Assembly (NCBI GenBank): GCA_965240325.2 | Contig: OZ251245.1 | Span: 744,001 to 808,000 of the forward strand | Length of the DNA stretch: 64,000 bases | Source of the DNA: Rebecca billardiae RCC1528 | Taxonomy: Eukaryota; Protista; Haptophyta | Direction: 5' to 3' | In this document: in pieces, positions 6,088 to 47,090 of the stretch | Layout of the letters: the number at the start of each line of letters is the position of its first letter | Position numbering within the stretch: position 1 is the stretch's first letter | Made by a program: the position numbers and the translations under genes | Notes under the pieces: model-generated | What the model was told of the DNA's origin: nothing | Seen by the model: only the letters and a program-made list of their open reading frames with translations | Database searches by the model: none

Positions 6088-6140
6088 CGGCATCGGCATC
6101 AGGCATCAGCAGCGGCAGATGATGAGTAGTCGTCGTGACG

Positions 6141-6182
<42 letters not shown>
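6141..6182. repeat. (TA)n microsatellite in an AT-rich intergenic patch
   Basis: Directly visible. Further TA-rich tracts at ~6540-6595 and 55873-55986. Confidence 0.95.
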
Positions 6183-6736: not shown

Positions 6737-6873
6737 TACAGTGTAACCAGAATAAGAGACGCACACAGCTCAGGCATCACTCATCAGGCGAGATCATTGA
6801 CGCCCGCCAACTGTCACCGCCCATGAAGCCGTCGCCGACGATGGTAGCGCCGTCGGAAAATGCGTTCAGCCGT
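6737..6873 (+). repeat. Dispersed repeat R1, copy 2 (with short insertions)
   Basis: TACAGTGTAACCAGAATAAGAGACGCACACAGCTCAGGCA… aligns to 2820-2942. Confidence 0.7.
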
Positions 6874-19827: not shown

Positions 19828-19880
<53 letters not shown>

Positions 19881-20456: not shown

Positions 20457-20488
<32 letters not shown>

Positions 20489-22127
20489 GCGCGCAGCCGC
20501 AGTGCCGCGCGTGGCGCCATTGGCACCAAGCGCGCCGCGCGCGTCGCGGGCGCGCCGCCGGCCGCGCCGCCGGGCGGCGGCGGCGGCGGCGACAGCCGGC
20601 GTCGCGCGCGCCGCCACCTGCGCTCGCGAACCAGCGCCGCCGCCGACTCGCCCGGCGCCCACGGGCCCTCGAAGCCCGGCGCGTAGGCCCAGCAACCGGC
20701 GTCGGTGCGCGGCGCGCGCACCGCGCGCCACGCGCCCTCCCACGCCCAGCCGTCAGGAGGCGGCAGCTGCGACAAGCTATGCGGCGGCGAGTCGTCGGCG
20801 GCGCCGACAGTGTCTCCGGCGCCGGCGGAAGCGGGGGCGGCTGCGTCGGCGGAGACGAGCGCGGCTTGCTCCGCGCCGCCGCCGGCGCGCGCGCGCGGCT
20901 CACGGCCCTCCGCCGCGCCATCGCCGAGCCCGCCACCGCCGCCGCCGAGCTCGCCGCCGCCGCCGCCGGGCCCGCCACCGCCATCGCCGCCGCCGGGCCC
21001 GCCACCGCCGCCGCCGGGCTGCGAGCAGCACGCCCGGCCGCTCTCGTCGCACGGGTCAGTCGGCCTGAGCGAGCGCTCGGCGAAGGGCTCGAACGCATGT
21101 GCGCGCCGCTGACGCTGCACCACATCCGTTGCTCCATGCGTCGGCGGCGACGGCAGCCATGCTGAATCACGCTCGCGCCGCTCGGCGCGCGCGCCGCCGC
21201 CGCCGCCCTCCGAGCGCACCTCGGCCAGCACGTCGCTCAAGTTGCGAAGCCACACGGGGGCGACCAGCGCGAACTCGTGCGCGGGCGCCGCGCCGCCGAG
21301 CGCCGCGCCGCTCAGCACGCGCAGCTCCAACCTGCCGCCGCGCGCGTCCGACAGGACGAGCGCCGCGCTGGCGTCAGCACCCGCGTCCGCGTCGGCCGCG
21401 CCGCCGAGCTGAGGCGGGCGCGCCCTGACCACCGCCTCGTGCGCCGGCGCGGCGGGGCCGCGGTCTCCTCGTCCCAGGCCAGTTGGCTCGGCGCTGGCCG
21501 ATAGCTCCGCGCTGACAGCCAGAGGGCAGTTGGGCGGCACGTGCAAACCCACGCTCTCGGCCGGCTGCAGCAGCGTCGGCGGGAGCGGCGCGGCGCAGGA
21601 CTCGAGGCCGCCCGCGCCGCGCACGCGCACGCGCGCCTCCTGGCAGAGCCGGTTGCTCAGCACCGCGGGCGCGCACAGCTCCGCGGTGCGCGGCGCGCGC
21701 GGCGCGCGCGCGCGTGCGCGCAGCAGCATTGCAAAGTCATGCGCGCGCGGCGTGTGCGCCGCGCCGGCGCCGGCCGGCGCGTCGGCGGCGCGCACGAGGC
21801 GGAGGCGGCCGTTGGGGGCGCGCGGGGTGGCGACGCTGGGCGTCGCGCCGTCCGCGCCCGCGCCGTGCGCGTCGCCGGCGTCGAGCGCAGGCGCCGTGAG
21901 CACGGTGGCGAGGGCGGCGCCCGTGCCCAAGCCGGGCGCGCGGCCACGAGCGCCGCGCGCGCGCACGGAGGCCGCGCCGCCCGCTGGCGGGGGCAGCGCA
22001 AGCTCCGCCTCAGTCGACCAGCCGTACGCGGGCGCGTCGGCCCGGCCCGCATGATCGCGCGCGCCGCCGCCCGGGCTCCCGCGGGCCGTCTCGGGCCCGT
22101 CGCCGTCGTCGCCGGTGGCCGCGGCCG

Positions 22128-22159
<32 letters not shown>

Positions 22160-22585
22160 GCGGCGGCGGCGGCGGGCGCCGGGCGCGCCGCCACCCGCCA
22201 CGGTGCGGCTGGCAGCGCCATCGGCGACGCGGGGAGGGCCAGCCGCGCGCCCGGTCCGAGCACCGCGCGGAGCTCGAGCGAGGCGCCGCCCTCGCGCGCG
22301 GGCTGCGTCGCGCGCACCTCGAGCGCGCGCGCGCACGCGTTGCGCACCGCCCACGCCGAGCGAATCGTCAGCAGCACAAGGGGACCGGCCCAGCTGACTT
22401 CGACCGCCGCGCACGCGGCGCGCCGCCCGTCGCGTGGGTCGCGAAGCGGCAGGGACCAGCTGCCGGCGCGCGAGACGTCGAGCGGGGGCAGCGGCTCCCA
22501 AGCCTCGAGCCACACGTGCACGCGCCGGCCGTCGGCGCCGGCCGCGTCCGCGTCCGCGCCGTCGTCGTCGTCGTCGTCGCTCCAG

Positions 22586-22616
<31 letters not shown>

Positions 22617-25600
22617 CGAAGCCGCCGCCGCCGCCGCTCGCGCGCGCGCCGCGCCGCGCGCCGCCGCCGCCGTCGGCGAGTGACAGCACGCAGCGCTCGC
22701 CCGGCGCGAGCACCTGCCACACGCCGCCCGCCGCGGTGCGGGCGTACAGCCGCGCGCCCGTCTCGTTGGCGAGCGCGTGACTCGGCGCGCGCGCGCGGCG
22801 AACCAGCAGCCCGGCGACCGGCGCGCCGGCCGCGCGCGCGCGCCTTTCCCCTTCGTGCGCCGCGCGGAGCGCCTGCGCTGCGCGGCTGAGGAGGGCGAGG
22901 AGCTCGGCGGACGCGATGAGGTTGAGGCGCGAGGCGGAGCGCAGCTCGACTGCCCAGCGCAGCGCGGCCGACGCCGCGCCGCCGCGCGGCGGCGCGGCCG
23001 GCGCGGTCGACGGAGCGGTCCGTTCGCCCGCCGCCAACTCCGCCGCGCTCCGCGCGCGCTCGCCTACAGCCGGCGGCGCCGCGGCCGGCGCCGCGGCGGC
23101 CAGTGCCGCGCCGCCCTCCGCCCCCTGCACAATCAGCTCGAACGGCCACGGCTCGGCGAGCGGCTCCCACACGGCGAGCGGCGCGTTGTGCGCGCGCACG
23201 CCCGCGCGCGCGGCGAGCGCCGCGGTGAACCGCACCTCCGCGCCGCCCGCGCACCCGTCGGCGGCCGCGTCGGCAGACGCGCCGCCGCCGCCGCCAGAGG
23301 CGCCGCCGCCGCCGCCGCAGCCGCCGCCGCCGCCGCCGCCGCCGCGGCCGCCAGAGGGCGCGGAGCGCAGCGATGCGCTGAGCAGGTCGACGCCGAGCTC
23401 GACGAGTGGCACGGCGCGCGTGGGCGACGAGTCGTCCACGAGGAGCAGACGCGCGCCCGAGGTCATCAGGTCCGCAGAGACGGCGAGCAGCGGCAGCATG
23501 CGCCCCGGCGGCGGCGGCAGGGACGGCGGCGACGGTTGCGCGGGCGACGGCGCATCGGACGGCCGCTCGGCGCCGCCGCCGCCGGAGGGCGCCGCGCCGG
23601 CCGGCGCGGCATCCTCCTCGGCGAGCGCGGCGGCGGCGGAGATCGCGATCTCGGAGAGCACCGAGAGCGTCGTGTACGACAGCCGCGCGCGCAGCTGGCT
23701 CGTCACGTGCGCGTGCACGAGCACACGCGGCACGCGAGGCGCGGACGGCCGCGCGGCCGCGCGCGGCGCGCGCGCGGCGCCCGCGGGGACGACGCCTGTG
23801 GCAGGCTGCTCCGCCGCGGCGGCGTGCGCGCTCTCGGCGAGCGCCGCGGCGGCGCTGGGCGCGGCGCCGTCCGCGCCGAGCCCCTCCTCCGCGCCCTCCG
23901 CCTCGGCCGGGTGCAGCGAGAGACTCGCCTCCATCCCCAGCGGCCGCAGCAGTTGAGCCGCCGGCTCCGGGGAACCAGGGGTAGTACCAGGGCCGTCGCC
24001 CGCCGCGGCCTCAGCCGCCGACGCTCCTTCCGACGCCTCGCCGTCGGCGCCGGCGCGCTCCGCGCTCGCGCGATCCAACCGGTGCGCCTCCGCCGCGGGC
24101 TCCGCCCACAGGTTCGCCCCGACCGAGCCCACGGCGACCCGCGCCGCGGCCTGCCCATCCGCCGCGGCGGAGAGTGCGAGGGAGAAGGCGGCGGCTCGCA
24201 GCACGAGGGTCGCGTGCGCGCCGCCGCCGCCGGCTGCCAACCCCGCGGCCGTCCCGCGCGCCGGCGCTCCGCCGCGCGCGCCACCTGCCTGCACCACGGC
24301 CTCCGCTGCGGGCACCGCGAGCCGCACGCCGCCGAAGAGGAGGTCGAGGTCGAGGCACGCCGCAGCCGCCGCACCCGGCTCGGGCGGCGCGGCCGAGGCG
24401 GCGGGCGCGGCCGCGCTCGCCGCCGCCGACACCGCCAACCCTGCCGGCGCCCGCGCGTCGCGGCGCGCCGACTGCGGTGACAGCGGCGGTGGCGCGGCGG
24501 CGGCGGTGGCCACGTCGAGCGCGGCCGACGCCTCGGCGAGCGCGCCGAGCAGCCGCCGGAGCGGGCCGACACGGAGTGTGCACTCGAGCGCGGGCGCGTG
24601 CACGCACGCGCGCACGCGCGGCGCGGCGCCCGCGAGATCGAGCGAGACGCGCGCCCGGAGCGCGGAGCTCGCCGCCGCCGCCGCCGTCGCGAGCGCGTCA
24701 GTTGCAGAGAGCCGGCGGGAGAGCCGGCGCCCGCCGGCGCGGCCGGCGGCGCTCCGCCGCCCGCGCCGCTCGACGTCGTCGCCCTCCGCGCCCGCCTCCT
24801 CCGCCGCGGCGGGCGCGCGCCCGCCCGCCGCGCCCGAGACGTCGGCGGCGGCCGGCGCCGCCGCGCCGCCGCCCACGAGCTGTGCGGGCGCGCACGTGCG
24901 CGCCAGAATCGACAAAGAGGCCGCGCCGTCGCCGCCCTCGGCCGCGGCGAACGTGACGAACGCCAGCCGCGCGCTCAGCTGCGCGCGGCTCCCGACAAGC
25001 GACGCGTCGAGATCGCAATCTCCCACGCGCACCGTCGACGCCGTGCCGCGGCCGTCCACCAGCGCGAGCTCGGTCGGAGCCAGCCGCAGCGACACGCGCG
25101 CGCGCGCCGACGGCGGCGGCCGCGCGTCTGCGAGCGCGGCCGCGGCCGCGTGCGCGCGCGCCTCTGCCGCGGCGCGCACCGCGGCGAGCGCGTCGTCAGC
25201 AGCCGCGTCGCGCGCGAGCGCGGCGCTCGCGCCGACCACCACCGCCATCAGCGCGCCGAGGCGCGCGGGCGAGATTGCAATCTCGAGGGTCTGTGCGAGT
25301 GGGGCGCCCGCCCCCGCCTCGTGCGCCGCCGGCTCGGCGCCGCCGCCAGGCGCGCCCGCGGCCGCGCCCGCCTCCCGCGCGCGCTCGGCGCCGCGAGGCT
25401 CCGCAGACGCCGCCGCGCCCGCCGCGCCGTCCGCGGCGGCCGGGCACCCCGACAGCGCCGCGTGCAGCTCCAGCTGCGGCAGCCGCGCCGTCGTCGCGAG
25501 CTCGCCCGGCACCGCGCACACGCTGGCGCGCACGCGCACGGCCAGCCCGGACACGAGCGCGGAGTCGGAGGCGGCGGCGGCGTGCGCGCCGTGCGGCTGC

Positions 25601-25816
25601 TGCGCGGCGCCAGGGGCGGTTGCGGCGCGCACGCCCAGCCGCGCGCGCTCGAGGCTGAGCTCAAACGAGTCGAAGAGCACGGACGCCGACGCCGACGCCC
25701 CGGACACCGACGCCGACGCGGCCGCGGCCGCGCCCGCGCCGGCAGCGGGCGGCGCGGCGGGCGGCGCGGCCGCGGCCGCGCGCCGCTCGCGCGCCGCGGC
25801 GCGTGCGCCTGGCCCT

Positions 25817-25847
<31 letters not shown>

Positions 25848-28425
25848 GCGCGAGATCGTCAATCTCGAGATGGTCGATCTCGACGGGCTGTATCTCGGGC
25901 GGTGTGTCGACACTCTGCAGCCGGAGCCAGCCGAGCTCGACGAGCAGCGCGGCGCAGCGCGCGTCGCGCTCATCGGCGGGGACCACGATGGAAGGCGCGC
26001 GCACGCGCGCCGAGAGCACAAGCCTTCCGTGCGCGCGCGCGGCGAGCGCGTCTGCGAGCGCGCGCGCGCGCCACTGCGCCGCCGAGTCGAGCCGCGCGCG
26101 CACGAGGGCGGCCATGGCCTCGTACTCCGCGTCCGGCACGCCGTCGGGCTGCGCAAACGCGGCGAGGGCGGAGGCGAGCGCGGGCGAGGCGACGATGCGC
26201 GTCGGGGCCACGACCGTCAGCCGCACGGAAGCGGCCGCGCGCGACGGGTCCGGCTTGGCGCCGCGCGCCGGCGGCGGGTGCGTCTCAGCCACGAGCTCCC
26301 ACGGCGCGGCGCCGCCCGCCGGCGCTGCTGGGCGCTGCGCAGCCGCCGCGCGGCGGGCGTCTGCGCTGCCACCGCCCGGCGCGCGCCGCCCGCGCCCGCC
26401 CGCCGTGTCGGGCTGCGGCGCCACCCCGCCTCCGCCGCCTGGCGCGCCCGCGGCCGCCTCGGCCGCGCTGGCCACAACCGATCGGAAGCTCGGCGCGACG
26501 CCCGCGCGCAAGTCCTCCAGGTCGAAGCTCTCCATCGCGGCGCGCGCGTGCGACGAGCCGTCCGCGCGCAGCCGCACGGCCGCGACGAGCGTCTGCACGC
26601 GCGCGCGCAGAAGCCGGCCGCCGCCCGGCGCCACGCCCGCACCCACGCTTACAGTCAGCGGCTCGGCTGCACCAAGCGTCAGATCGAGCGCGCCAATCTC
26701 CGCATCGAGGGCGGTGTGCGCGTACTGCGCGGGCGCGCCCGCGCCGCCGCCGCCGTCGGGCACCTCCACGCCCAGCCCCGGAAGGCGCTCGAGCTCGCGG
26801 CGCTGCAAGCGGCGCAGCGCGAGGGCGGGCGGCGCGCCCGCGGCGAGCGCAAGCGCCTGCGCGCGCACCGCGGCTTCCTCGGGTTCGGAGGCGTCGGAGT
26901 CAGAGCCGCCGTCGGTTGAGGCGCCGTCGGCGGCGGCGCCGCCGTCGGCGGAGCCGCCGCCGCCGCCGCCGCCGCCCCACCACCGCGCCAGCCGTGAGCC
27001 CCAGCCCTCGCCCGCGTGCCGCCCGTGCGCCCTCTCGCGCGCGCGCTCGGCGCGGCGCGCCGCCTCCATCGCCGCCTGTCGCCGCCACAGCGCCACATCC
27101 CACGGCGGCAGCTGCCGCCGCTCCAGAGCGTCAAGGCGGCGCGCCTCCGCGGCGGAGAGGGCGGAGGGCCCGCCCGCGCCGTCGGCGCGCGCGCGCAGCC
27201 GCGTGTACTCGAGCCGCAGCGCGCGCCGCGCCGAGACCGAGCCCGCGCTGAAGCCAACCTGCCAGCAGCGCAGCGCAGCGAACGCGCGCGGCGCGGCGCG
27301 CGCGAGAGCCGATTGCCACCACGCGCGGGCGGAGGCGCCGGCGCGCGGGCGCGCGCGCGGGCGCGCGCCCGGCGCGTCGGCGGTGCCCGCGCCGCCGCCC
27401 GCCGCGCCCGACGCCGACGCCGCCTCGCCGCTCAGCCGCGCCGCCGCCTCGAGCACCGTCAGATACTGGGGCCGGCTCAGCCGCACGTGCGCGCTCGGCA
27501 GATGCAGCCGCAGCGCGCGCGCGGGCTCGGCGCGCGCCGCGGCCTTTTGATCCAGGAGCAGCCTTGCCTCGGCGTAGGTTGGCAGCAGCGCCACGTGGCC
27601 GTCGTCGCCGAGCAGCTCGTGCAGCGCGCGCGAGCCCGCGGCGGCGGGCGCGCCGCGCGCGTGCGCCGCGATCCGCGCGCTCGCGCCCGCGCCCGCGCGC
27701 GCCGGCAGCACATATGCACACAGCCCGGCGATGAAAGCACGCTTCCGCTGCAGCGACGGGTCGGCGCCGAACGCGGGCTCCCAGCGCGCGTCCGCCGAGT
27801 GCACGCGCAGCTCGTCGATGACCAGGCCCATCGCCGCCGGCGCCGCCAGCTCGGCGGGCACCGCCGCACTCGGCGCGCGCGTCCCGGCGCCGCTGGATGC
27901 CGCCGCAGCGGCGCGCGCGTGCGTGGCCTCATAGCGCACATGCACGTCACGGACCGAGAGCTCGAGGTTGGCGGCGATCTTGCTCGCGAGCGAAGCGCGC
28001 GAGCCGTCGTCCTCCGGCGCGGCGTCGCCACGTGCCGCGCCGGCGGCGCCGATCTCGGCGAGCAGCTCGGCGGCGCACGCCTCAATCTGCGCCTGCTTGC
28101 GCGCCCACGCCCACGTGTCGCGCGCGGCGTCGTCCCACTCGCTCGCGTCGACGGGCGCGGCGACGACGTGCACGCCCTCGACGACCACGCGGATCGGCTC
28201 GGAGCCGAGGCGCGACCACGGCACGCGCAGCTCGATCCGCGCGACCGCGCCCGCGATCACGTCGACCGGCAGCCCGAGCGCGTACAGCGCCTCGGGGCGG
28301 ATCTCGAGCGTCTTGAGCTCGACGTGGCCCTCCCACACGCCGACGCGGAGCGAGTCGGAGTCGATCCCCTTCACGTACCGGCCCAGCACGCTGTCGAGCA
28401 CCGTCGCGAGCACGCCTTGCAGCAT
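17170..28425 (-). CDS. VPS13: VPS13-family bridge-like lipid transfer protein (~3750 aa)
   Basis: Chorein_N start (MLQGVLATVLDSVLGRYVKGIDSDSLRVGVWEGHVELKTL…RVPWSRLGSEPIRVVVEGV), a WEPLAEPW motif, and a C-terminal ATG2_C-like block (GSLELLGNPRGLL…GASDAFYEP…G…KPAVGVVD). Single uninterrupted ORF. Confidence 0.92.
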
Positions 28426-28679
28426 CAGGCCGGTGGGCTGTGCAGCGGCGGCGGCAGCGGCGGCGGCCGGCCCGGGCGTCGGCCGCTCGGTGGCAGTACT
28501 AGGCCCGAAGTTCCTCTTGTTTCGGCAACCCAAGCCTACACACGTCCTCCGCCACTCCGGGCGGCCCGGACTTTTTTGTTTTGTTCGGGCCAAACAGTTT
28601 CGGCAGCCCGTACGTTTGGTACGATCATCCGATAAGCAGATTCTGCTGAGATTCCGCTGATGCGCTGTGGCTGGCGCCC
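28426..28679. promoter_or_regulatory. Probable bidirectional promoter (VPS13 / K+ channel 2)
   Basis: 254-bp, lower-GC gap between divergent start codons. Confidence 0.5.
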
Positions 28680-29946
28680 ATGAAGCTCGCCGCGGCCGCG
28701 AGCGCCGTCGCCAGGGCGGCGCTGGACGAGGCGCACAAGTGGCACCGGTACGTGGCGGAGCTGGCCGTCTCAGGGCTCCTGCTTGCCCTCTTCATCCTCA
28801 CCGCCGCGCTCTACTACCCGTACGCCGAGGGCTGGAGCGTGCTTGATTCCATCTACTTTTGCCTCGCCGTGCTCACGACGAATGGGTATGGCGATCTGCA
28901 CCCGACCAGCGCGGGGGTGCGCGTGTTCACCGGGCTGTTTGCGCTCTTCGGCATGGTGGCCATCGTCTTTGCGCTCTTCCTCATCACCGACGCGATGATG
29001 CGCGCGGAGGAGGCGGCGGCGCGGCACATTGCGCGCGCGTCGCTGCGCCGGATCCGCCGCGTCGGCGCGCTCGTGCGCGAGCACAGCCGCAGCTCGCACT
29101 CGGCGCGGCGCCGGTCGAGCACGCTCAATGCCGACGTCACGAGTCCAGCAGCCCCGCCCGCCGCCCGCCCCGCGCCCGTCGGCGCCGCGCGCCGCCGCCC
29201 CGCGCCGCTGCTTCACGTCGAGGGTCCGTACGAGGCGGCCTGGCATGTGGCGAGGCTCGCGCTGCCCGTGCCCATAGCGATCGGCATCGGCATGGGCGTG
29301 TTCCAGTACGTGGAGGGGTGGAGCGCGGTCGACGCCTTCTACTGGGCGGTGAGCACCGTGACGGGCACCGGTGCGCGCGCGCACGCGCGCGGTGCACGCG
29401 CGCCGCGCGCCGCGCGCACGCGTGCGCCCGGCCGCGTCTCACCAAGGCGTGTGCACCGCCCCTCCCCGCATCGCAGGCATCGGCGACGTGGCCACGCGCT
29501 CCAAGCTTGGCCGCGCGATGGCGTGCGCGTACATCCCGTGTGCGTTCGGCGCCTCGGCCAAGGTTCTCAAGGACATCGCGCAGTTCGCCACCTCGCAGTG
29601 GATGGTGCGGCGGGTCGCGGACGCGCCGCAGATGCTCGGCCTGGGCGACGCCGCGGCCGCGGTGAGCAGCGGTGTGCACACCTCCGCCCAGGTGGAGGGC
29701 GGGCTGACGGAGGAGGGCTTCGTCGTGCTCGCGCTCACGCGGCTGTACGGCGTCGACCCCGAGGTGGTGCGCATGCTGCGCGACCAGTTCGACGCCCTCG
29801 ACCGCGCGGGCAGTCCGGGCGGCAAGCGGCACGGCGGCGTGCCGCTGGACGAGCTCTTCCTGGTCGCGCAGTCTCACGCCGAGCACGCGGACGGCCCGGA
29901 CGCCGGCGTGGCGCCGCACGCGGCGCCCAGAGAAGTGCGCGCGTAG
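28680..29946 (+). CDS. Two-pore (TPK/K2P-type) potassium channel, paralog 2; intron 29371-29476
   Basis: P1 DSIYFCLAVLTTNGYGD; P2 DAFYWAVSTVTGTG|IGD across a 106-bp GT-AG intron. C-terminus LTEEGFVVLALTRLYGVD…RDQFDALD is homologous to paralog 1. Confidence 0.88.
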
Positions 29947-30240
29947 CCCGCGCCGGCCCGGGCTGCTCCGCGAACTGGTCGTATGTATACGGTATTATGC
30001 TCCGTACGACCAGTTCGGAGCAGCATAATACTACCGCCCTTGGTTATATACCATATGACGGTGGCGGTAGGGTGTGAGCAGCGTAGCGAGCAGGCCGCCA
30101 TGCGAGCTGCGCAGCGGCAGCACTGAGCTTAGGTGCGGATCACGCTGCAAGTGCAGCAGTTCGGTGAACAAGACGCCAGGGCCGGCGCACAGCGGTTATC
30201 GCCCGAGGCTGGTCCGTCGGCCGTCGGGTATTATTCAATC

Positions 30241-35924: not shown

Positions 35925-38705
35925 ATGCGCCAGCGGCGCGGCTGCTCGCCGCGCGGCGCCGCCGGCCCCTTCGCCGCCCTCCTCCTCCTCCTCGCGGTGT
36001 GCCCCGCCTGCGCCCGCCTCGTCATCGAGGCCGGTCCGCCGCACCTTCTCGGCGCCGAGCTGCTCGCCGCGCCGTTCGCGTTCACGCCCGCCGCGTTCGA
36101 CGTGCGCGCGCGGGTGGTGCTCACGCGCTCGGACGAGTGGGACGACGGGGCGTGCCCGCCCGTGTACGTCGGCCCGCAGTCGCTCGACGGCGCCATTGTC
36201 GTGCGGTATAGACCGTCGATCTCCGACTGCTCGTTCGAGTCGAACGCGCGCGGCGCGGGCGCTGCGGGCGCGGTCGGCTGGCTCATCTACAGCGCCGCGG
36301 CGGCCACGAGCTTCGACCCGTTGCCGGGGTGGCGGTACCACTACTTTTGGCCGGGCGACTCGCGCAGTCTGCCCCACCCGCCCGCCGCCGACATCACACA
36401 GCGCAGCGCGAGTCCGCTCGTCGATGCGCTCCTCGCCGGGCAGGAGGTGCACGCTCGCTTCACGCGCTCGGAGACAATGTGGGCGACGGTGCGCCTCTCG
36501 CCCGCGTGGGTCGTGCGCGACGTGCTGCTCATCGTGCAGTCTCCCGTGCTCATCGAGCTCATTGCCAACCGGCTGCGCGCGTTCTGGCGCGCGGACGGCC
36601 GGCTGTCGCCGGGCATCGCGCAGGCTGTGCTGCTGCTCGAGCTGTGCGCTCAGCTGGTGCGGCTGGTGCTACGGGCGGCGCAATCGGGAGGGCTGCCGTT
36701 CCCGGTGTGGATGCTCCTCACCGTCGCGCACATCTCGATCGGCGTCGTCGCGAGCACGCTCTTCCTGCTCTACTGGGCGCAGGCAGCCTGGCCCTCCGCC
36801 GGAGTCGACGGCGTGCGGTTCGCGTCTCCCACGCTCGCGCACAGCCCGCGCGCGCGCCGCTGGCTGCTTGCGTTCGTCGCAGCCATCGCGCTCCTCGGCA
36901 TGGGCCTGGGCGCGGTCTTCTTCGTGCCGGCGCCGGATGTCCTCATGGTCGTGCAGATCGTCATCACCGGCGTGCTGCTGCCGCTCCTCGTCCTCGTGCT
37001 CTCGCTGCACACGCACCTGCGCGCGCGCAAGGTGCTGCCGTCTCTGCCGCCTGGCGTCGCGCGCAGCCTGACGCGCTCGATGGCGTGCGCCAACGCAGCG
37101 TCTGCGGTCGCGCTGCTCGCGGGCGCGGGTCTGGCGGTCTCGACGGGGCACCCATGGCTCTTCGTCCTCCTGAGCTTCGTCTTCGCAAGCGCGCTCAACG
37201 TGAGCTCCGCCGTGCACGCCTCCACGTTTGCGCCCCTCGGCGTGAAGCTGGTCCCGGGGCCGCTCGAGCGCTGCGCGCGCGCTCTGCTCGCGGCCGCCGC
37301 TCGCCTGTGCTCGTTCGCGTGGCGCGCGGTGCGCCGGCTTTGCCGCTGCGACGCGAACGTGGCCAAGGCGGGCGAGGCCCGCCTCTCGGCCTACAGCGGG
37401 ACCTCCACCGAGCGCACGGAGGCCTCGGCCTCGGCCCAGGGCACGCCGCCGCAGCGGTCGCTCTTCACGACTCGGCCACACAAGATTGTCCCGGCGTCGA
37501 GCCACGCCGGTGCCGCGGCCGTCCAGCAGCCCGAGGCGCCCGTGCTTGAGGAAGAGCGGCCGCACCTGCTCCTGGGCGTGCAGCTGGGCTACGTGCGCAA
37601 GCTGCAGGCCGAGCTCCACGTCTTGCCACACCTCGCCTCCTACCAGGTCGCCGCTCTCGCCAGGCAGCTCTGTGCGTCGCTGCCCGCTCGGCGCATGCTC
37701 GGGTTCAGCGGGCCGGCAGGCCCGTGCTCAGTGGCGGAGATGGTGAGGGATCGGCACACGGCGGACGGCTGCCCGGTGGTGGCGCGCGCCAACCTGTTCG
37801 TCAGCCACGCGCAGCCCTGCAATTTTGACGGGATGCTCTCCGCCGTCGAGCTGTACGCACGCATCCACGACCTGAAGCCCACCGACACCTACCTCTGTGC
37901 GCGCCGCGCCGCGGCGAGATTGCATCTCGCGCACCGCCGGCGTGCGGGCGAGATCGCTTCTCGCGCACTGGCTGGCTCGCGCGTGGCGCGGCGCGGCCTC
38001 GCGCCACGCGGCCTGCTGCTCCTCCTGCGTGACGTTTGCACGGGGCGCGCGTGGCGGGTCCGCCCTGCCTCGGTCTCAAGACTGCTCACAGACAGCGCGC
38101 CCCGCGTGTGCCGCGCGCCGCGCGCTCACGGCGCAGGGATCGATGTGCTGTGCATGCGGCAAGGCATGCCCCGGCAGGAGGTCCGGTACATCGGCGACAT
38201 CGTGCGCGCGACCGGCCGAGTCGTGCTCGTGCTGCAGCCGTGGACGGCGCCCGTCTGCCTCACGCGCGCGTGGTGTCTCTGTACGCCCCGCACGCGCCCG
38301 TGCGCGCGGCCACCGCGGCGCGTGGCGCGTGGCGCGAACACGCGAACACGAGTGCGCGCCCTGACGGTCCGGCGACACACGCGCACTCCCCTGCCGCCCG
38401 CCACCGCAGTCGAGGTGCTCATGGCTGCCATGCAGGAGATGCCCGTCGGCATTGCGCTGCCCACCGCCGAGCTCCGCGCCGTCGCGGCGGCGCTCGCGAG
38501 CGACCCCTCCAGCTTCGACTCTGCGCTCACCAAGTTCGACGTGCGCGCCTCCGTGTCCTCCGTGGAGGAGGACAGGCGGATCATCTTTGGGATGCTCGAG
38601 GACCTCTTCGGCGATGCGGAGGCGGGCGCCGACGAGTTCAACCGGGCGACGCACGCCGCGTTGCGCCAGGCGCTGGCCGGCTTCTCGTGGTCCGCTGCCG
38701 TGTGA
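35925..38705 (+). CDS. Putative receptor: signal peptide + PA domain + 7TM + TIR/HET-like domain (~803 aa; introns 37897-38136 and 38281-38409)
   Basis: Signal FAALLLLLAVCPACA; PA motif LDGAIVVRYR…CSFESNARGAGAAGAVGWLIY…PAADITQRSASPL; seven hydrophobic helices. Splicing restores FVSHA…YL|WIDVLCMRQ…VVLVLQPW…LTRAWCL|FE. Confidence 0.8.
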   Translation: MRQRRGCSPRGAAGPFAALLLLLAVCPACARLVIEAGPPHLLGAELLAAPFAFTPAAFDVRARVVLTRSDEWDDGACPPVYVGPQSLDGAIVVRYRPSISDCSFESNARGAGAAGAVGWLIYSAAAATSFDPLPGWRYHYFWPGDSRSLPHPPAADITQRSASPLVDALLAGQEVHARFTRSETMWATVRLSPAWVVRDVLLIVQSPVLIELIANRLRAFWRADGRLSPGIAQAVLLLELCAQLVRLVLRAAQSGGLPFPVWMLLTVAHISIGVVASTLFLLYWAQAAWPSAGVDGVRFASPTLAHSPRARRWLLAFVAAIALLGMGLGAVFFVPAPDVLMVVQIVITGVLLPLLVLVLSLHTHLRARKVLPSLPPGVARSLTRSMACANAASAVALLAGAGLAVSTGHPWLFVLLSFVFASALNVSSAVHASTFAPLGVKLVPGPLERCARALLAAAARLCSFAWRAVRRLCRCDANVAKAGEARLSAYSGTSTERTEASASAQGTPPQRSLFTTRPHKIVPASSHAGAAAVQQPEAPVLEEERPHLLLGVQLGYVRKLQAELHVLPHLASYQVAALARQLCASLPARRMLGFSGPAGPCSVAEMVRDRHTADGCPVVARANLFVSHAQPCNFDGMLSAVELYARIHDLKPTDTYLCARRAAARLHLAHRRRAGEIASRALAGSRVARRGLAPRGLLLLLRDVCTGRAWRVRPASVSRLLTDSAPRVCRAPRAHGAGIDVLCMRQGMPRQEVRYIGDIVRATGRVVLVLQPWTAPVCLTRAWCLCTPRTRPCARPPRRVARGANTRTRVRALTVRRHTRTPLPPATAVEVLMAAMQEMPVGIALPTAELRAVAAALASDPSSFDSALTKFDVRASVSSVEEDRRIIFGMLEDLFGDAEAGADEFNRATHAALRQALAGFSWSAAV

Positions 38706-39001: not shown

Positions 39002-39877
39002 ATGGCGGCGAAAGCCGCCCCGAACGGCGGAGCGTCGGGCGGACGCGGACGGCGCGCGCAGCAAGCGACGCTCGCAGGGCCTCGTGTCGTCATCGTCGGC
39101 GCAGGCTATGCTGGCCTCGCGCTGGCGCGCGCCCTGCAACTGGCTGGTGTGAGTGCAGTCGTCTACGAGCAGGACGGGCCGCCCAGCCAGATGCCCATCT
39201 ATGGCGAGCTTCGTGTGCCCTCAGCCGAGCGCGTGCTGACAGCGCTAGGCCTCCGACCGGAGTGGGAGGCACTGCGAGCGAATGGGTCGCAGCCGTACTG
39301 CCTGGACTTTCATGGCCTGCGCGACACTCTCGCCTCCAGCCTGCAGCGCGGCAGCTTGCACTGCGAGCGTCGGGTGGTGAGTGTGACGCGCCGAGGCACA
39401 GACAAACTCTGGCTCGAGTTCGCAGACGGCGGCGGCGTGGCCGCGCATCTCGCCGTGGTTGCGAGCGGCATGACTGTGCCGTGCGTCGCGCGAGAGGCCC
39501 TGCCGCAGACGGCGGCAGTGGGCGACGTTCGCTGGGCGCACGGGCGCTGGTGGGACTTTGGCTCAGGGCGTATCCGCTGCGGTGCCAACATGGCGCTGAC
39601 AGATGCCATGGAGCTGAGCGAGATGCTCCGGCGCGGAATCGAGCGTGGCGACGCCCCTCCGCTCGAACTCGGCGCGTTCGCCGCCTCCCGGCGCCGATGG
39701 CCAGATGGCAGCAGGAGGCGACTCACCCAGCCGCGACCGTGCCTGAGCCGCGTGCTCGTCATCCTCGCGGCCGCCACCACCGCCGCCACCGCCGCCACTG
39801 CACTCGCCACGTTCGCCACGAGACCGTCGCTGCCATCGGGCATCCTAGAGGGAGGCCGCACTCTGCACGCGCGATGA
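39002..39877 (+). CDS. Short FAD-dependent monooxygenase-like protein (possibly internally deleted)
   Basis: Rossmann motif VVIVGAGYAGLALARAL…VYEQ, degenerate DG motif (AHLAVVASG), and GD motif (AVGD…GANMALTDAMEL). Confidence 0.7.
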   Translation: MAAKAAPNGGASGGRGRRAQQATLAGPRVVIVGAGYAGLALARALQLAGVSAVVYEQDGPPSQMPIYGELRVPSAERVLTALGLRPEWEALRANGSQPYCLDFHGLRDTLASSLQRGSLHCERRVVSVTRRGTDKLWLEFADGGGVAAHLAVVASGMTVPCVAREALPQTAAVGDVRWAHGRWWDFGSGRIRCGANMALTDAMELSEMLRRGIERGDAPPLELGAFAASRRRWPDGSRRRLTQPRPCLSRVLVILAAATTAATAATALATFATRPSLPSGILEGGRTLHAR

Positions 39878-40028: not shown

Positions 40029-43000
40029 TGTCAAAGGAATCGCCAATCTACAGTGATTTCCAATTTCCAATCCAACATTTTACTCGCAGTCACACAGTGG
40101 CGGCGCGACCGCTGCGGCGGCGCTCGCACAAAATCCTCCAAAATCAACCTGAACCTCATCCTAAAATACAGCAGGACAGCATGGCTGGCGGCGGCATCTC
40201 GAAGTATTCCAGATGATTCTGAATGAACGCGGAAACATGAGCCGAGCACCACGAACACGTTGTGCTCTCCGCCGCAAATAAGAGCCGAAGCCGTCGACCG
40301 ACCTCGCGACCGTCAAGCCTCGAGACGCGTTCCCTGACATGCTAGCACGGTGCTGGGAGAACTTGGGCAAGGATGGAGACGACGAGAACAGCGGCAAGGA
40401 CGTGAACGGCCATCAGCCCGCCCCAGTTGCTCCCCTCATTGGGTTGAAGCCAGGCGTGGCAGAGCGCGCGGCATTGCCGCGCTGCTCATCGGCGATCGCG
40501 CGCAAGCGCACGCCAGACTACCTCGCCGCTGCCCTGAGGGGCATGCAGGCTGAGAAGAACCGGCAAGGCGAGAAGCTCACGCTTCTCCGCAAGCCCATCT
40601 CCAGCGCCTCCGGGCCTGGCAACATCACTGACCTGAACTCAGGCAGCATCGTGTCGTATGCGCGCAATGCTGCATCGCACGCAAGGCCTCGAGCCGACAT
40701 CAAGGATCACCTTGAGGAGGAGGTTCGCGCACAGCGCGGTGAGGAGGAGCGTTGCCGCTCGCATCCCCCGCCATCGCGCCACTCCATCCGCACGCACGTC
40801 GTTGCGCAGGGGATCTCAACAACTACCGCCCGGGACTCTGCGCCCGCGAGCGCGGTTCAAGAGCGCGCGGCTGAGAGCCCGCAGCTCAAGGAGTGCCTTG
40901 CGGCCTCCGAGTCATCGAACGAGGTCACCGAGCGTTCCGGGGCAGATGTAGCGCTCGACGCTGCTGCCGCTGATGCCGCTCCGACCGTCGAGGCCCTCGA
41001 GCCTGCCAACGCTGCTCGGCGTGCTGGCCTTCTGGCCGCCGCCAATGACAGCGCGGTCGTGACCGCAGTCAGTCTGCAGCCTCGCTCGCACGACTCTGTG
41101 TCTGAGTCTGGCCGATCGAACGATGACATTAACACCGATGAGTGCGACGCAAACGACCTGTATGGTCTGGCAGAGCAAACTATGCTCCAAGATGCTACGA
41201 CACGTGACTCTGTCACAGCGAGCTCAAGCATCAAGTCAGCGGCCGCATTTATTATTGATGCGCCTGACCCAAACAAATACGTTTACCCCAAAATTACCAG
41301 CCTCACGATGGCTTCCGAAGCCGAGCTGCTCGCCACGAGCGACACAAGCAGCCGCGAGATGACCGCCGCAGAGACGGCAGAGTCCTCGTCTGGCACGTAT
41401 CGACTCGCGTCGAACGTAGGAAGCGCATGCGATGCAGGGGGGGCATCATACACCTGCTTGACGGCAAAGCCGCAGCAAAACCAAGTTGGCGAGCGCGACG
41501 CGCGTGCGCATGCATCAGCTGCGTCAGCCATCACAACGCCACACTCTTGCAAGGAAGAGTATTCCGCCGAAGCTGCCGCGGATGCACATGCATCACCGCT
41601 GGACAGAACGAGCGTGAAGAAGCCCAAAGAAGGCACCACAGCCTCGACGAGGGTCACTCCTCGCTCGAAGGTAGAGCGCGAATCGCCACAGAGCGCGCGC
41701 GACACATCGACCAATGCACTTGAGTCGAAGAAACGTGACTGGATAGTCATCGAAGGAGGAGTCACAGACTCTAATCCAACCAAGAAGGAACGTGTGTTCA
41801 TGGCACGCGAATCCTCGGCAGGAGTGGATACACCCGCCACACACAAGCTGACACAGTCGGCTCTGAAATCCAAGCGCGCGGTACACAGCGCGATACGGGA
41901 TGCACTCGCAGAAGTGAGCACCTACTACAAGGGCAAATCCTCAGATGTCACACCTGACATAATGGAGCCCAAGGATAGCAAGCTATCCGGCTTTCAACTC
42001 ATTGCCAAAGACAAATGGGTGAAAGACGCAGCCAAAATCGATCCATACAAGGCTGACAACGCTGACGCCAACAAGATCGGATCGGTCTACGATCGATCTG
42101 CGGCAGCGATATTCAAGCAGCTGAAGGACTCTATTGAGCCTCAGTTATTCGCCTATCTGGAATCGAAGCTGCACATCAGCGATCCGACCAAGAACTACTT
42201 GGATCTGGCGCTGCTGCTACAGATATTTGAGCGCGAGCTCAAGATCACAACTATGTCCGAACTCAGGGATGAATTCCTGAAGTTATACCCGACAAAGGTG
42301 TCGCCCATTGGCGCATCGGACATTATCAAGAAATCCGTCGAGCAAGTCCGCTCATCTCGATATGGGAATCTGGACGATGCTACGATGTTGGTCTTCAAGC
42401 TGTATAACAGCATGCACGACCATCCCCAAGTCTACGAGTCAGTTATCTCGCACTTCGGAGCGCTCACGCCCGAGCAATGTGTGGATAACACTGACCAGAT
42501 AATGGCCCAGATGGAAGATGCCTACAAACGGCACGGCTCAATGAAGCTACTCCATCAGAACAATACCAAGGGGAGAGAGACCGAAAATTATTCCAAGATA
42601 CGCCAAAATGCTGATTATCAGCAAGGCACGCGGCGACGCGGTGACTTTGAGGGCGCCGAAGTCTTCGCCGCTCAGGCCCAAAAGGCTCCAGCCAATGGCG
42701 AGAGCGGGCCGAATAACTCGGACACCGGCAAACGGTGCACTCACTGTGGTCTCAAGAACCATACTGCCCAGCAGTGTTGGAAGCTCCACCCAGAGCTACG
42801 CCCCAAGGCCAACAATTACAACAAAGGCAAAAACAAGGGAGCCAACAAATTTCCCAAGGAGCGTATCCATTTCCTGGATATTCCTGCTCCGGATGCCTAT
42901 GATTAAATATCAAGGCAGGGCATAGCCCAATAACAAGGTCCAAGATCAAGGCCAAAGAGTGAACATATGGTGCAAATAAGCCCAGGACTGACTCGGGTTA

Positions 43001-43605: not shown

Positions 43606-46600
43606 TGTCAGGGAACGCGTCTCGAGGCTTGACGGTCGCGAGGTCGGTCGACGGCTTCGGCTCTTGTTTGCGGTGGTGCACAGCTTGTTTGTGCTGCGCT
43701 CGGCTCATGTTTCGTTCATTTCAGAAGCGCATCTGGAATGCTTCGAGATGTCGCCGCCAGGTCGCCGCCAGCCATGCTGTCCTGCTGTATTTTAGGATGA
43801 GGTTCAGGTTGATTTTGGAGGATTTTGTGCGAGCGCCGCCGCAGCGGTCGCGCCGCCACTGTGTGACTGCGAGTAAAATGTTGGATTGGAAATTGGAAAT
43901 CACTGTAGATTGGCGATTCCTTTGACACCCCCCCTCAATCCAATATGCGCTCGTCTGTGAGGACTAAGCTTGGATTATGAGTGATTTTGGGCTTGGTATT
44001 GTTTGTGCATCTGTGTGCATGAGTGAATTGGAGTCAGTAATGGTTGCCAATGCCAGGATACGGGTCATGTGCTGGGACTTCCGTGTGACGGTTTTGGGTA
44101 ACCCGAGTCAGTCCTGGGCTTATTTGCACCAAATGTAGTTCACTCTTTGGCCTTGATTTTGGACCTTGTTATTGGGTCATGCCCTGCCTTGATAGTCAAT
44201 CATAGGCATCCGGAGCAGGAATATCCAGGAAATGGATACGCTCCTTGGGAAATTTGTTGGCTCCCTTGTTTTTGCCTTTGTTGTAATTGTTGGCCTTGGG
44301 GCGTAGCTCTGGGTGGAGCTTCCAACACTGCTGGGCAGTATGGTTCTTGAGACCACAGTGAGTGCACCGTTTGCCGGTGTCCGAGTTATTCGGCCCGCTC
44401 TCGCCATTGGCTGGAGCCTTTTGGGCCTGAGCGGCGAAGACTTCGGCGCCCTCAAAGTCACCGCGTCGCCGCGTGCCTTGCTGATAATCGGCATTTTGGC
44501 GTATCTTGGAATAATTTTCGGTCTCTCTCCCCTTGGTATTGTTCTGATGGAGTAGCTTCATTGAGCCGTGCCGTTTGTAGGCATCTTCCATCTGGGCCAT
44601 TATCTGGTCAGTGTTATCCACACATTGCTCGGGCGTGAGCGCTCCGAAGTGCGAGATAACTGACTCGTAGACTTGGGGATGGTCGTGCATGCTGTTATAC
44701 AGCTTGAAGACCAACATCGTAGCATCGTCCAGATTCCCATATCGAGATGAGCGGACTTGCTCGACGGATTTCTTGATAATGTCCGATGCGCCAATGGGCG
44801 ACACCTTTGTCGGGTATAACTTCAGGAATTCATCCCTGAGTTCGGACATAGTTGTGATCTTGAGCTCGCGCTCAAATATCTGTAGCAGCAGCGCCAGATC
44901 CAAGTAGTTCTTGGTCGGATCGCTGATGTGCAGCTTCGATTCCAGATAGGCGAATAACTGAGGCTCGATAGAGTCCTTCAGCTGCTTGAATATCGCTGCC
45001 GCAGATCGATCGTAGACCGATCCGATCTTGTTGGCGTCAGCGTTGTCAGCCTTGTATGGATCGATTTTGGCTGCGTCTTTCACCCATTTGTCTTTGGCAA
45101 TGAGTTGAAAGCCGGATAGCTTGCTATCCTTGGGCTCCATTATGTCAGGTGTGACATCTGAGGATTTGCCCTTGTAGTAGGTGCTCACTTCTGCGAGTGC
45201 ATCCCGTATCGCGCTGTGTACCGCGCGCTTGGATTTCAGAGCCGACTGTGTCAGCTTGTGTGTGGCGGGTGTATCCACTCCTGCCGAGGATTCGCGTGCC
45301 ATGAACACACGTTCCTTCTTGGTTGGATTAGAGTCTGTGACTCCTCCTTCGATGACTATCCAGTCACGTTTCTTCGACTCAAGTGCATTGGTCGATGTGT
45401 CGCGCGCGCTCTGTGGCGATTCGCGCTCTACCTTCGAGCGAGGAGTGACCCTCGTCGAGGCTGTGGTGCCTTCTTTGGGCTTCTTCACGCTCGTTCTGTC
45501 CAGCGGTGATGCATGTGCATCCGCGGCAGCTTCGGCGGAATACTCTTCCTTGCAAGAGTGTGGCGTTGTGATGGCTGACGCAGCTGATGCATGCGCACGC
45601 GCGTCGCGCTCGCCAACTTGGTTTTGCTGCGGCTTTGCCGTCAAGCAGGTGTATGATGCCCCCCCTGCATCGTATGCGCTTCCTACGTTCGACGCAAGTC
45701 GATACGTGCCAGACGAGGACTCTGCCGTCTCTGCGGCGGTCATCTCGCGGCTGCTTGTGTCGCTCGTGGCGAGCAGCTCGGCTTCGGAAGCCATCGTGAG
45801 GCTTGTAGTTTTGGGGTAAACGTATTTGTTTGGGTCATCAGGCGCATCAACAATAAATGCGGCCGCTGACTTAATGCTTGAGCTCGCTGTGACAGAGTCA
45901 CGCGTCGTAGCATCTTGGAGCATAGTTTGCTCTGCCAGACCATACGGGTCGTTAGAGTCGCACTCATCGGTGCTAATGTCATCGTTCGATCGGTCAGACT
46001 CAGACACAGTGTCATGCGCGCGAGGCTGCAGACTGACTGCGGCGGTGGCACGACCTGCGCTGTCACAGGCGGCGGCCAGATGGCCAGCACGCGGAGCAGC
46101 GTCGGCAGGCTCGAGGGCCTCGACGGTCAAAGCGGCATCGGCGGCAGCAGCGTCGAGCGCTGCATCTGCCCCGGAACGCTTGGTGACCTCGTTCGATGAC
46201 TCGGAGGCAGCAAGGCACTCCTTGAGCTGCGGGCACTCGGCCTCGCGCTCAGCCGCGCTTGCGGGCGCCAAGTCCCGGGCGGTAGTTGTTGAGATCCCCT
46301 GCGCAACGACGTGCGTGCGGATGGAGTGGCGCGATGGCGGGGGATGCGAGCGGCAACGCTCCTCCTCACCGCGCTGTGCGCGAACCTCCTCCTCAAGGTG
46401 ATCCTTGATTGACTCGGCATGAATCCGGTCAACACGCGGTGCGATCGCACTCGACGCGTGGCTGCCTGAGTACAGGTCAGCGGTGTTGCCAGGCCCGTAA
46501 GCGCTGGAGATGGGCTTGCGGAGAAGCGTGAGCTTCTCGCCTTGCCGGTTCTTCTCAGCCTGCATGCCCCTCAGGGCAGCGGCGAGGTAGTCTGGCGTGC

Positions 46601-47090
46601 GCTTGCGCGCGATCGCCGATGAGCCGCGCGGCATTGCCGCGCGCTCTGCCACGCCTGGCTTCAACCCAATGAGGGGAGCAACTGGGGCGGGCTGATGGCC
46701 GTTCACGTCCTTGCCGCTGTTCTCGTCGTCTCCATCCTTGCCCAAGTTCTCCCAGCACCGTGCTAGCATGTCAGGGAACGCGTCTCGAGGCTTGACGGTC
46801 GCGAGGTCGGTCGACGGCTTCGGCTCTTGTTTGCGGTGGTGCACAGCTTGTTTGTGCTGCGCTCGGCTCATGTTTCGTTCATTTCAGAAGCGCATCTGGA
46901 ATGCTTCGAGATGTCGCCGCCAGGTCGCCGCCAGCCATGCTGTCCTGCTGTATTTTAGGATGAGGTTCAGGTTGATTTTGGAGGATTTTGTGCGAGCGCC
47001 GCCGCAGCGGTCGCGCCGCCACTGTGTGACTGCGAGTAAAATGTTGGATTGGAAATTGGAAATCACTGTAGATTGGCGATTCCTTTGACA
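43606..47090 (-). mobile_element. Gag-only Ty1/copia-type LTR retrotransposon, copy 2 (distinct LTR variant)
   Basis: 322-bp LTRs (43606-43927 and 46769-47090). TSD AAAAG. PPT at ~43928-43938. No pol. Confidence 0.96.
44196..46769 (-). CDS. gag: Extended Gag protein (857 aa; the frame extends into the LTR to an ATG at 46871)
   Basis: C-terminal half appears identical at protein level to copy 1; N-terminal part diverged. Confidence 0.88.
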   Translation of the reverse strand: MLARCWENLGKDGDDENSGKDVNGHQPAPVAPLIGLKPGVAERAAMPRGSSAIARKRTPDYLAAALRGMQAEKNRQGEKLTLLRKPISSAYGPGNTADLYSGSHASSAIAPRVDRIHAESIKDHLEEEVRAQRGEEERCRSHPPPSRHSIRTHVVAQGISTTTARDLAPASAAEREAECPQLKECLAASESSNEVTKRSGADAALDAAAADAALTVEALEPADAAPRAGHLAAACDSAGRATAAVSLQPRAHDTVSESDRSNDDISTDECDSNDPYGLAEQTMLQDATTRDSVTASSSIKSAAAFIVDAPDDPNKYVYPKTTSLTMASEAELLATSDTSSREMTAAETAESSSGTYRLASNVGSAYDAGGASYTCLTAKPQQNQVGERDARAHASAASAITTPHSCKEEYSAEAAADAHASPLDRTSVKKPKEGTTASTRVTPRSKVERESPQSARDTSTNALESKKRDWIVIEGGVTDSNPTKKERVFMARESSAGVDTPATHKLTQSALKSKRAVHSAIRDALAEVSTYYKGKSSDVTPDIMEPKDSKLSGFQLIAKDKWVKDAAKIDPYKADNADANKIGSVYDRSAAAIFKQLKDSIEPQLFAYLESKLHISDPTKNYLDLALLLQIFERELKITTMSELRDEFLKLYPTKVSPIGASDIIKKSVEQVRSSRYGNLDDATMLVFKLYNSMHDHPQVYESVISHFGALTPEQCVDNTDQIMAQMEDAYKRHGSMKLLHQNNTKGRETENYSKIRQNADYQQGTRRRGDFEGAEVFAAQAQKAPANGESGPNNSDTGKRCTHCGLKNHTAQQCWKLHPELRPKANNYNKGKNKGANKFPKERIHFLDIPAPDAYD

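Follow-up and report, generated by a model that had tools for sequence, protein, structure and literature searches.

A candidate one-component receptor of the haptophyte Rebecca billardiae with a PA-like ectodomain, a GPCR-fold membrane bundle and a TIR-like tail

Toll-like receptors unite in one chain a sensor outside the cell, a span of the membrane and a TIR-type domain in the cytosol, and the family has expanded by duplication. The bigrams of oomycetes and other protists carry an N-terminal seven-transmembrane (7TM) G-protein-coupled receptor (GPCR) fused to a putative catalytic domain at the C-terminus and are present in multiple copies in protists; five types have been described (GPCR-PIPK, -INPP, -AC, -PDE and -TKL) and none of them is a TIR fusion, nor does the paper on them mention TIR. 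We analyzed a gene whose predicted product bears likeness to both. It lies at positions 35,925 to 38,705 of a 64,000-nt stretch of DNA (hereafter the window; positions 744,001 to 808,000 of the forward strand of contig OZ251245.1, assembly GCA_965240325.2) from the haptophyte Rebecca billardiae RCC1528. Our preferred interpretation, to which we assign a probability of roughly 0.55, is that the locus holds a working gene of three exons whose product is an 803-residue one-component membrane receptor with a switchable TIR-like tail. The architecture itself, i.e., a signal peptide, a PA fold, a GPCR-fold 7TM bundle, a helix 8, a linker and a cytosolic TIR-like domain of 260 residues, is very probably correct.

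Toll-like receptors sense through an LRR ectodomain and span the membrane with one helix; the receptor instead combines a PA domain with a GPCR-fold bundle of seven helices, and no sequence relationship connects the two outside the superfamily of the tail. Relative to the GPCR-bigrams, the receptor stands apart by its tail, which has no TIR-like counterpart among the described types, and by its PA ectodomain, which none of them possesses. The fold of this ectodomain is shared with VSR1 and ZNRF3/RNF43, where it also forms a lumenal or extracellular ligand-binding module adjoining the membrane; those proteins, however, are single-pass and have EGF or RING partners, and the Pfam PA score of the window protein stays just below the cut-off. 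The tail belongs to the same domain family as the TIR-like domains of TPR proteins from oomycetes, haptophytes, chlorophytes and chytrids, which are often automatically named "kinesin light chain". These TPR proteins are soluble and carry the domain N-terminally, ahead of their TPR arrays, whereas the window protein is a membrane receptor that ends with it. The receptor is a TIR-type output on a new receptor chassis. Full-text searches of the literature found no description of a TIR/HET-like tail on a 7TM or PA receptor, and the known GPCR-bigram types are without it, which agrees with an initial reading made from the letters of the window (hereafter the sequence-only reading) that knew of no described example of this architecture.

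Three described domain families are relevant to the tail. Enzymatic TIR domains such as those of SARM1, RPP1, RUN1, AbTir and SpbK are, like the tail, output modules joined to sensor domains; catalysis in SARM1 and AbTir needs the Glu and the Trp (W638 and W204, respectively) of a WxxxE motif located in helix C. The fungal HET domain (PF06985) is regarded as a remote relative of TIR and is sufficient for cell death, its activity being still unproven. HET domains and the tail family are both large and variable in copy number, but the former are fungal and found on NACHT-WD40 proteins, whereas the latter is protist-wide and found on TPR arrays or on PA-7TM receptors. Finally, DUF4062 (PF13271; NIR/TeTIR) comprises recently reported families of TIR-like enzymes that cleave NAD+ (NADases) and are placed before NACHT ATPases; in contrast, no NTPase stands between tail-type domains and the TPR array or 7TM bundle.

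Gene structure and domain architecture

The open frame that contains the gene extends from 35802 to a TGA stop at 38703-38705 on the + strand, in surroundings of ~70% G+C, and its first ATG is at 35925. Excision of two GT-AG introns between this ATG and the stop yields the 803-residue product (Table 1). The ATG and TGA are located where the sequence-only reading had delimited the gene, and removal of the two introns that it had proposed joins YL/WIDVLCMRQ and WCL/FEV, giving YLWIDVLCMRQ and LTRAWCLFEV exactly as it had quoted them. The unspliced locus can also be read as a 926-residue open frame. As neither intron of the window copy shifts the frame or contains a stop, the splice model called for separate evidence.

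We conducted a six-frame search of the organism's own genome (72 Mb, 41 contigs) with this read-through frame and obtained 74 matching pieces. Exon 1 aligned contiguously with 17 paralogs across residues 28-456. Distant paralogs matched the exon parts of the frame only, and exon 2 appeared repeatedly as a separate piece of 144 nt; in some paralogs the three exon pieces were contiguous. One paralog, L013, lacks both introns and encodes the PA domain, the 7TM bundle and the motifs ...ANLFVSHSQ...FVWLDVMSIRQ...DPWDKPVCLTRVWCLFEL... in a single uninterrupted frame. Intron 1 measures 210 nt in paralog L002, 240 nt with an in-frame stop in L003, and 398 nt, which is not a multiple of three, in L005. 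The corresponding lengths of intron 2 are 120, 119 and 136 nt, the last two of which break the frame. GT and AG are kept in these three paralogs as in the window copy, and exon 2 is 144 nt long in all four. The same splice model applied to L002, L003 and L005 gave intact products of 803, 799 and 805 residues. Finally, the spliced window protein matched a profile built from 21 paralog domains in one uninterrupted alignment of residues 543-801 (244 bits, E 8e-77).

From this comparison of copies, we conclude that both introns are real and that the read-through protein is not the conserved product, because L013 presents the domain without interruption and because paralog introns break the frame while exon 2 stays at 144 nt. 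The alternative is that no splicing occurs; the product would then be the 926-residue read-through, or else the C-terminal part would be a gene of its own. Such a reading would fit the window introns, both of which are multiples of three and free of stops, but it conflicts with the stop and frame shifts in the paralog introns next to a constant exon 2 and kept GT/AG, with the restriction of distant matches to exon parts, and with L013 and proteins of other organisms that carry the N- and C-terminal parts in one frame. We consider it extremely improbable, and the 926-residue protein was rejected on the intron lengths of the paralogs.

Table 1. Predicted features of the receptor gene, with positions in the window.
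Feature	Positions	Strand	Description
Whole gene	35925..38705	+	Three exons, two introns, 803-aa product
Exon 1	35925..37896	+	aa 1-657 and first base of the W658 codon; donor GT at 37897
Signal peptide	35925..36017	+	aa 1-31; hydrophobic core aa 15-31, ending ...PACA/RL; from hydropathy
PA-like ectodomain	36018..36494	+	aa 32-190; alpha/beta domain in the AlphaFold model; conserved C77 and C102
Seven-helix membrane bundle	36501..37226	+	aa 193-434; GPCR-like fold
Helix 8 (cytosolic helix after TM7)	37260..37331	+	aa 446-469; preceded by a conserved GPL motif
Variable Ser/Ala/Pro/Arg-rich linker	37332..37550	+	aa 470-542
Extended TIR-like domain	37551..38702	+	aa 543-803; split by both introns; profile match 244 bits
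Intron 1	37897..38136	+	240 nt, GTGCGC...GCGCAG, phase 1; in frame and stop-free in the window copy
Exon 2	38137..38280	+	144 nt; encodes (W)IDVLCMRQ...LTRAWCL(F)
WxxxE motif	38265..38414	+	R701-x-W703-C-L-F-E707; split by intron 2
Intron 2	38281..38409	+	129 nt, GTACGC...CCGCAG, phase 1; in frame and stop-free in the window copy
Exon 3	38410..38705	+	(F)EVLMAA... to SWSAAV, then TGA stop

The N-terminal half was modeled with AlphaFold from an alignment of 18 paralogs (pLDDT 84, pTM 0.81). The signal peptide has low pLDDT and stands ahead of a folded ectodomain. The Pfam PA domain (PF02225) matches residues 73-127 of this ectodomain with E 3.6e-4 to 7.6e-4 and 20-21 bits, under the cut-off of 23.9, and reaches E ≤ 0.01 in 4 of the 18 paralogs. 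With probability 1.00, Foldseek identified the PA domain of an aminopeptidase (2ek8; E 4e-4), the PA domain of VSR1 (7f2i; TM-score 0.67) and the ectodomains of ZNRF3/RNF43 (~0.6; both scores by target). Structural neighbors of the ectodomain in the structure atlas carry PF02225, and C77 and C102 are kept in 17/18 paralogs. The ectodomain is thereby shown to have a PA fold and to bear a predicted disulfide, and the signal peptide, predicted to be cleavable, places it outside the cell or in a lumen.

Past the signal peptide, hydropathy reveals seven hydrophobic segments between residues 194 and 432, and the model places seven long helices at residues 193-434. The bundle aligned with class A GPCRs, Smoothened, Frizzled, GABA-B and LYCHOS with Z 16-19 over 223-257 residues (rmsd ~4 Å), which exceeds the caution line of Z ~13 that the alignment tool, VIA-align, sets for helical bundles; the matched GPCRs represent classes A, C and F. 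None of the class A microswitches (DRY, CWxP, NPxxY) was found among the conserved columns of the paralog alignment. Lysine and arginine together number 18 on the predicted inner loops and tail versus 1 on the outer loops. Taken with the seven helices, the signal peptide and the conserved cysteines of the ectodomain, this distribution indicates that the modeled receptor is oriented N-out and C-in with a cytosolic tail. These results bear out the signal peptide, the PA domain, the seven helices (which had been placed at ~36500-37240) and the extracellular N-terminus with a cytosolic domain that the sequence-only reading had proposed, the number of helices being odd. The flexible linker is matched by neither the N-terminal nor the tail profile and has the lowest identity to the paralogs, yet its frame is kept. 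A cluster from Endomyxa in the structure atlas presents a PA-7TM shape like that of the receptor, with a TM-score of 0.69 over 414 residues.

These N-terminal modules could also belong to a conventional G-protein-coupled receptor or to an endomembrane sorting receptor, in which the PA domain would bind cargo as in vacuolar sorting receptors and the tail would regulate trafficking or desensitization only. The nearest PA folds are those of VSR1 and ZNRF3/RNF43, LYCHOS is a lysosomal 7TM protein, and one locus of the genome just passes the G-alpha cut-off once neighboring pieces are summed. However, the lack of class A microswitch motifs in the conserved columns does not favor this interpretation, the G-alpha matches of the genome are weak and cover the GTPase core only, and a strongly conserved domain of 260 residues that also serves on TPR sensors has the look of an output module and not of a sorting signal. 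We regard a conventional or sorting receptor as improbable.

The TIR-like tail and its family

The tail consists of a helical N-terminal extension that starts at HLLLGV and of a core that runs from ANLFVSH (residues 622-628) to the C-terminus. Its near-invariant motifs are F-x-S-H, W-x-D...R-Q, D-P-W and R-x-W-C-L-x-E, the last of which contains WxxxE. The alignment of 21 paralog domains shows no variation at the W of WxD, at that of DPW or at the Glu of WCLxE, and at least 90% of the domains keep the F and H of FxSH as well as the R, W and C of RxWC. The last motif lies in the helix that comes after strand C, and its Glu stands four residues behind its Trp.

The sequence-only reading had called for a fold check of the tail with AlphaFold and Foldseek. 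The tail domain of L013 gave a confident model (pLDDT 93.6, pTM 0.91), whose best Foldseek matches were TIR domains, none of them reaching E 1e-3. When this model was aligned against representatives of all structures, SARM1, RPP1, SpbK, MyD88, IL-18Rbeta, RPS4 and MAL led the list with Z 6-6.9. Most of the top matches in this wide alignment were TIR domains, among which other proteins of TIR fold such as nucleoside deoxyribosyltransferases and ThsB were interspersed; SEFIR likewise came after the leading matches, and unrelated folds appeared only below Z ~4.8. In a second structure alignment, each of the first 44 matches was a TIR domain with Z 5.5-7.5, ahead of nucleoside deoxyribosyltransferases; SARM1 was best (Z 7.5 over 120 residues, rmsd 4.0 Å), and the TIR domains of the plant proteins RPPT, RPP1 and RUN1 scored Z 7.0-7.2. 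Because these Z values are moderate, the support for a TIR fold comes from the uniformity of the list. Enzymatic TIRs are the best and almost the sole structural match of the tail (Z 6-7.5 over 110-137 residues), and they present the same order of elements: strand A with hydrophobic-x-S-H/Y, strand B with W/F-x-D, strand C, and helix C with WxxxE and the invariant Glu. Judging from these models, the tail probably has a fold of the TIR superfamily.

Sequence searches gave fainter signals. The best PDB match of the family profile was a bacterial TIR domain (3h16, E 0.14), with FVSHA and WLD aligned to IFISHAW and WYD. When the profile of 21 sequences was compared with the TIR_2 domains of the genome using hhalign, the probability was 19%; with a profile of 178 sequences it was 29%, and that alignment extended from strand A to strand D and placed the Glu of the family on the invariant Glu of TIR_2. 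The HET consensus is made of the blocks ALSYxWG, WIDxxCIxQ and RGWxxQE, and the tail has three look-alike blocks in the same order: F-V-S-H-A-(W), W-I-D-x-x-C-x-x-Q and R-x-W-C-L-x-E. The wider consensus of the tail family, from the 178-sequence profile, reads FVSHAW / W.D.FS.NQH / LTRaWCL.E.

We then searched with existing domain models. Pfam TIR, TIR_2 and HET did not match the L013 domain at E ≤ 10, and the same models and DUF4062 matched none of the 21 paralog domains at E ≤ 1. A genome-wide search with PF13676 detected 24 places, none of them at loci with the PA-7TM-tail architecture, and a genome-wide search with HET (PF06985) found nothing at these loci, its best match (E 0.17) being elsewhere. 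The genome does contain at least 10 genuine TIR_2 domains elsewhere that score over the Pfam cut-off. The absence of a significant PF01582 or PF13676 match sets the tail apart from enzymatic TIRs, from which it also differs by its length of ~260 residues, its helical N-terminal extension of ~70 residues and its extra C-terminal helices. Canonical TIR_2 domains were also observed as tandems, with two domains in a frame, at G000:C5:1949398-1950210 (-) and G000:C13:1545244-1546164 (+). PADLOC models did not match the tail, and a single-sequence search of the PDB with the tail returned chance-level matches only. The best look-alikes of the tail proposed by a language model scored 0.75-0.76, below the useful range, and a cluster of haptophyte HNOB proteins was among the leads. 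An uncontrolled prediction of a complex of two tails scored 0.00, which we count neither way. Overall, the tail has HET-like motif blocks and, by hidden Markov models (HMMs), is not a member of TIR, HET or DUF4062. The TIR/HET label of the sequence-only reading is therefore kept for the TIR-like fold, the motif blocks and WxxxE, and it did not hold for membership in a known HMM family; the structural similarity to TIR is consistent yet moderate, with Z at most 7.5, and the profile alignment is weak, with hhalign probabilities of 19-29%.

The tail family is large. An exhaustive HMM search returned 10,583 cluster representatives at E ≤ 1e-3, including 1,128 at E ≤ 1e-30, with E down to 1e-92. 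In the structure atlas, the whole unit of 261 residues was found with TM-scores of 0.81-0.85 in oomycete, haptophyte and chlorophyte proteins, mostly together with TPR_10/TPR_12 arrays. Pfam scans confirmed arrays of TPR_10 and TPR_12 on family members, and the fusions occur in oomycetes, haptophytes and one chytrid; a chytrid member is automatically named "kinesin light chain 3". The statement in the sequence-only reading that, in protists, proteins of this subtype are usually soluble and carry TPR arrays was thus borne out. The PA-7TM half was present in 26 of the best 150 representatives. Two of these 26, P0028 and P0030, come from other samples, and their identity to any sequence of the R. 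billardiae genome is just 29-38%. The combination, for which the sequence-only reading had suggested a search of algal proteomes, is thus present in two other sources, and the architecture is not private to the R. billardiae genome.

Within R. billardiae, the tail domain is found at ~80 loci. PA-7TM loci number at least 45, and in at least 41 of these a tail lies downstream on the same strand; elsewhere, the domain stands before TPR arrays, on a protein that binds cyclic nucleotides, or alone. The cyclic-nucleotide case is L038 (G000:C19:601500-608500), where a long frame (2382-7001, +) has a tail-type domain at the N-terminus and a cyclic-nucleotide-binding domain (E 1.5e-16), and it constitutes a third sensor context for the tail domain.

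This distribution raises the possibility that the tail is a non-catalytic adaptor that would make homotypic contacts only, with the ~35 other proteins that carry the domain (fused to TPR arrays, fused to the cyclic-nucleotide-binding domain, or alone), as the TIR domain of a Toll-like receptor recruits MyD88. The presence of the domain in many soluble architectures of one genome is typical of homotypic adaptor networks, and the adaptor TIRs MyD88, MAL, TRIF and TRAM are among the structural matches of the tail. On the other hand, enzymatic TIRs depend on the very pair that the tail retains, an invariant Glu with a near-invariant Trp four positions ahead of it, and a pure scaffold would have less reason to keep them. 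A tail that is purely an adaptor seems unlikely to us.

Selection among paralogs and neighboring genes

We estimated the ratio of nonsynonymous to synonymous substitution rates (dN/dS) between the window copy and its paralogs. Relative to L002 and L003, dN/dS was lowest in the PA domain (0.5-0.6), higher in the tail (0.8-0.9) and ~1.15 in the 7TM block; relative to L005, the 7TM block had 0.81, the PA domain 0.52 and the tail 0.36. The low ratios of the tail and the PA domain relative to L005 indicate that the gene is under constraint. In the comparison with the closest paralogs, L002 and L003, it is the membrane core that changes fastest and not the ectodomain. Among distant paralogs, the cytosolic intracellular loop 1 (F.RADGG) and the segment after TM7 are best conserved, and the outer loops and TM4-7 are least conserved. 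This pattern of variation fits many specificities that would feed one output through a common inner face, and relaxed constraint or GC-biased dS may contribute to it.

In a further close paralog, L004 (G000:C15:2187521-2192842), which is 84% identical in the N-terminal half, neither exon 2 nor exon 3 is recognizable past intron 1; this copy is perhaps truncated or a pseudogene.

It is also conceivable that the window copy is a young duplicate drifting toward a pseudogene within a family that is functional. The ratios of 0.8-1.15 for the 7TM block and the tail relative to L002 and L003 would fit such drift, and L004 seems to be without exons 2 and 3. Yet the window copy has an intact frame, both splice sites and all of the conserved residues, its tail and PA domain show dN/dS of 0.36-0.52 relative to L005, and at ~70% GC the ratio may be inflated by an underestimate of dS. 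These observations make drift toward a pseudogene quite improbable.

Several other frames were observed in the window. An open frame of 3807 residues at 17173-28593 (-) fills a stretch of 80-83% G+C and has an N-terminal match to VPS13_N (E 2.6e-34); it looks like the gene of a giant VPS13-like lipid-transfer protein of extreme composition. The frame at 28680-30074 (+) has an Ion_trans_2 pore domain (E 6.6e-18) and looks like a K+ channel-like gene. About 300 nt past the stop of the receptor, a frame at 39002-39874 (+) resembles a Rossmann-type monooxygenase (FAD_binding_3), with no sign of a functional link. Just downstream, two long frames of 855 and 891 residues lie in opposite orientation in a stretch of lower GC (40339-42906, +, and 44196-46871, -).

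Possible functions of the receptor

In our preferred reading of a one-component receptor with a switchable tail, a ligand would bind to the PA domain or to the 7TM bundle and change the conformation or the clustering of the receptor. By analogy with Toll-like receptors, SARM1 and plant TNLs, this rearrangement would bring the TIR-like tails together and switch them on. Activated tails might then cleave NAD+ or a related nucleotide through the Glu of WxxxE. Alternatively, they might recruit the many soluble proteins of the genome that carry the same domain. The end result would be a defense, stress or cell-death response.

The individual steps differ in how well they can be defended. An immune or non-self role, which is suggested by analogy with the described TIR systems, is possible at somewhat less than even odds, and catalysis by the tail, argued from the same kind of analogy, is likewise a tentative proposal at clearly less than even odds. 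The full proposal is more specific: haptophyte-type algae would possess a hitherto undescribed class of one-component immune or non-self receptors in which a diversifying PA/7TM sensor switches on a TIR-like NADase tail, producing a nucleotide signal or killing the cell on contact with a virus, a bacterium, a grazer cue or a foreign conspecific. Taken as a whole, we consider this proposal doubtful.

Several points weigh against a switchable, TIR-like receptor. The tail is recognized at a significant level by no Pfam, PADLOC or PDB sequence model. The Z values of its structural matches, 7.5 at most, fall in the middling range of the tool. The hhalign probability between the tail and TIR_2 is 19-29%. 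The Glu was equated with that of TIR_2 through its motif position and a weak profile alignment and not by superposing residues. Finally, dN/dS near 1 in the 7TM block relative to the two closest paralogs could reflect relaxed constraint rather than diversification.

Innate immunity draws on TIR-type domains in bacteria, plants and animals alike, yet pathogen sensing in marine algae is almost unknown. The combination of a TIR-like output and a GPCR-fold sensor in one chain makes the detection of non-self by algae directly testable. More than 10,000 cluster representatives of the tail family are without a name in current domain databases, hidden as "kinesin light chain" or "hypothetical protein". 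If the immune and NADase reading is true, algae would have in this receptor a GPCR-fold equivalent of the Toll-like receptors, and the GPCR-bigrams would gain a sixth type.

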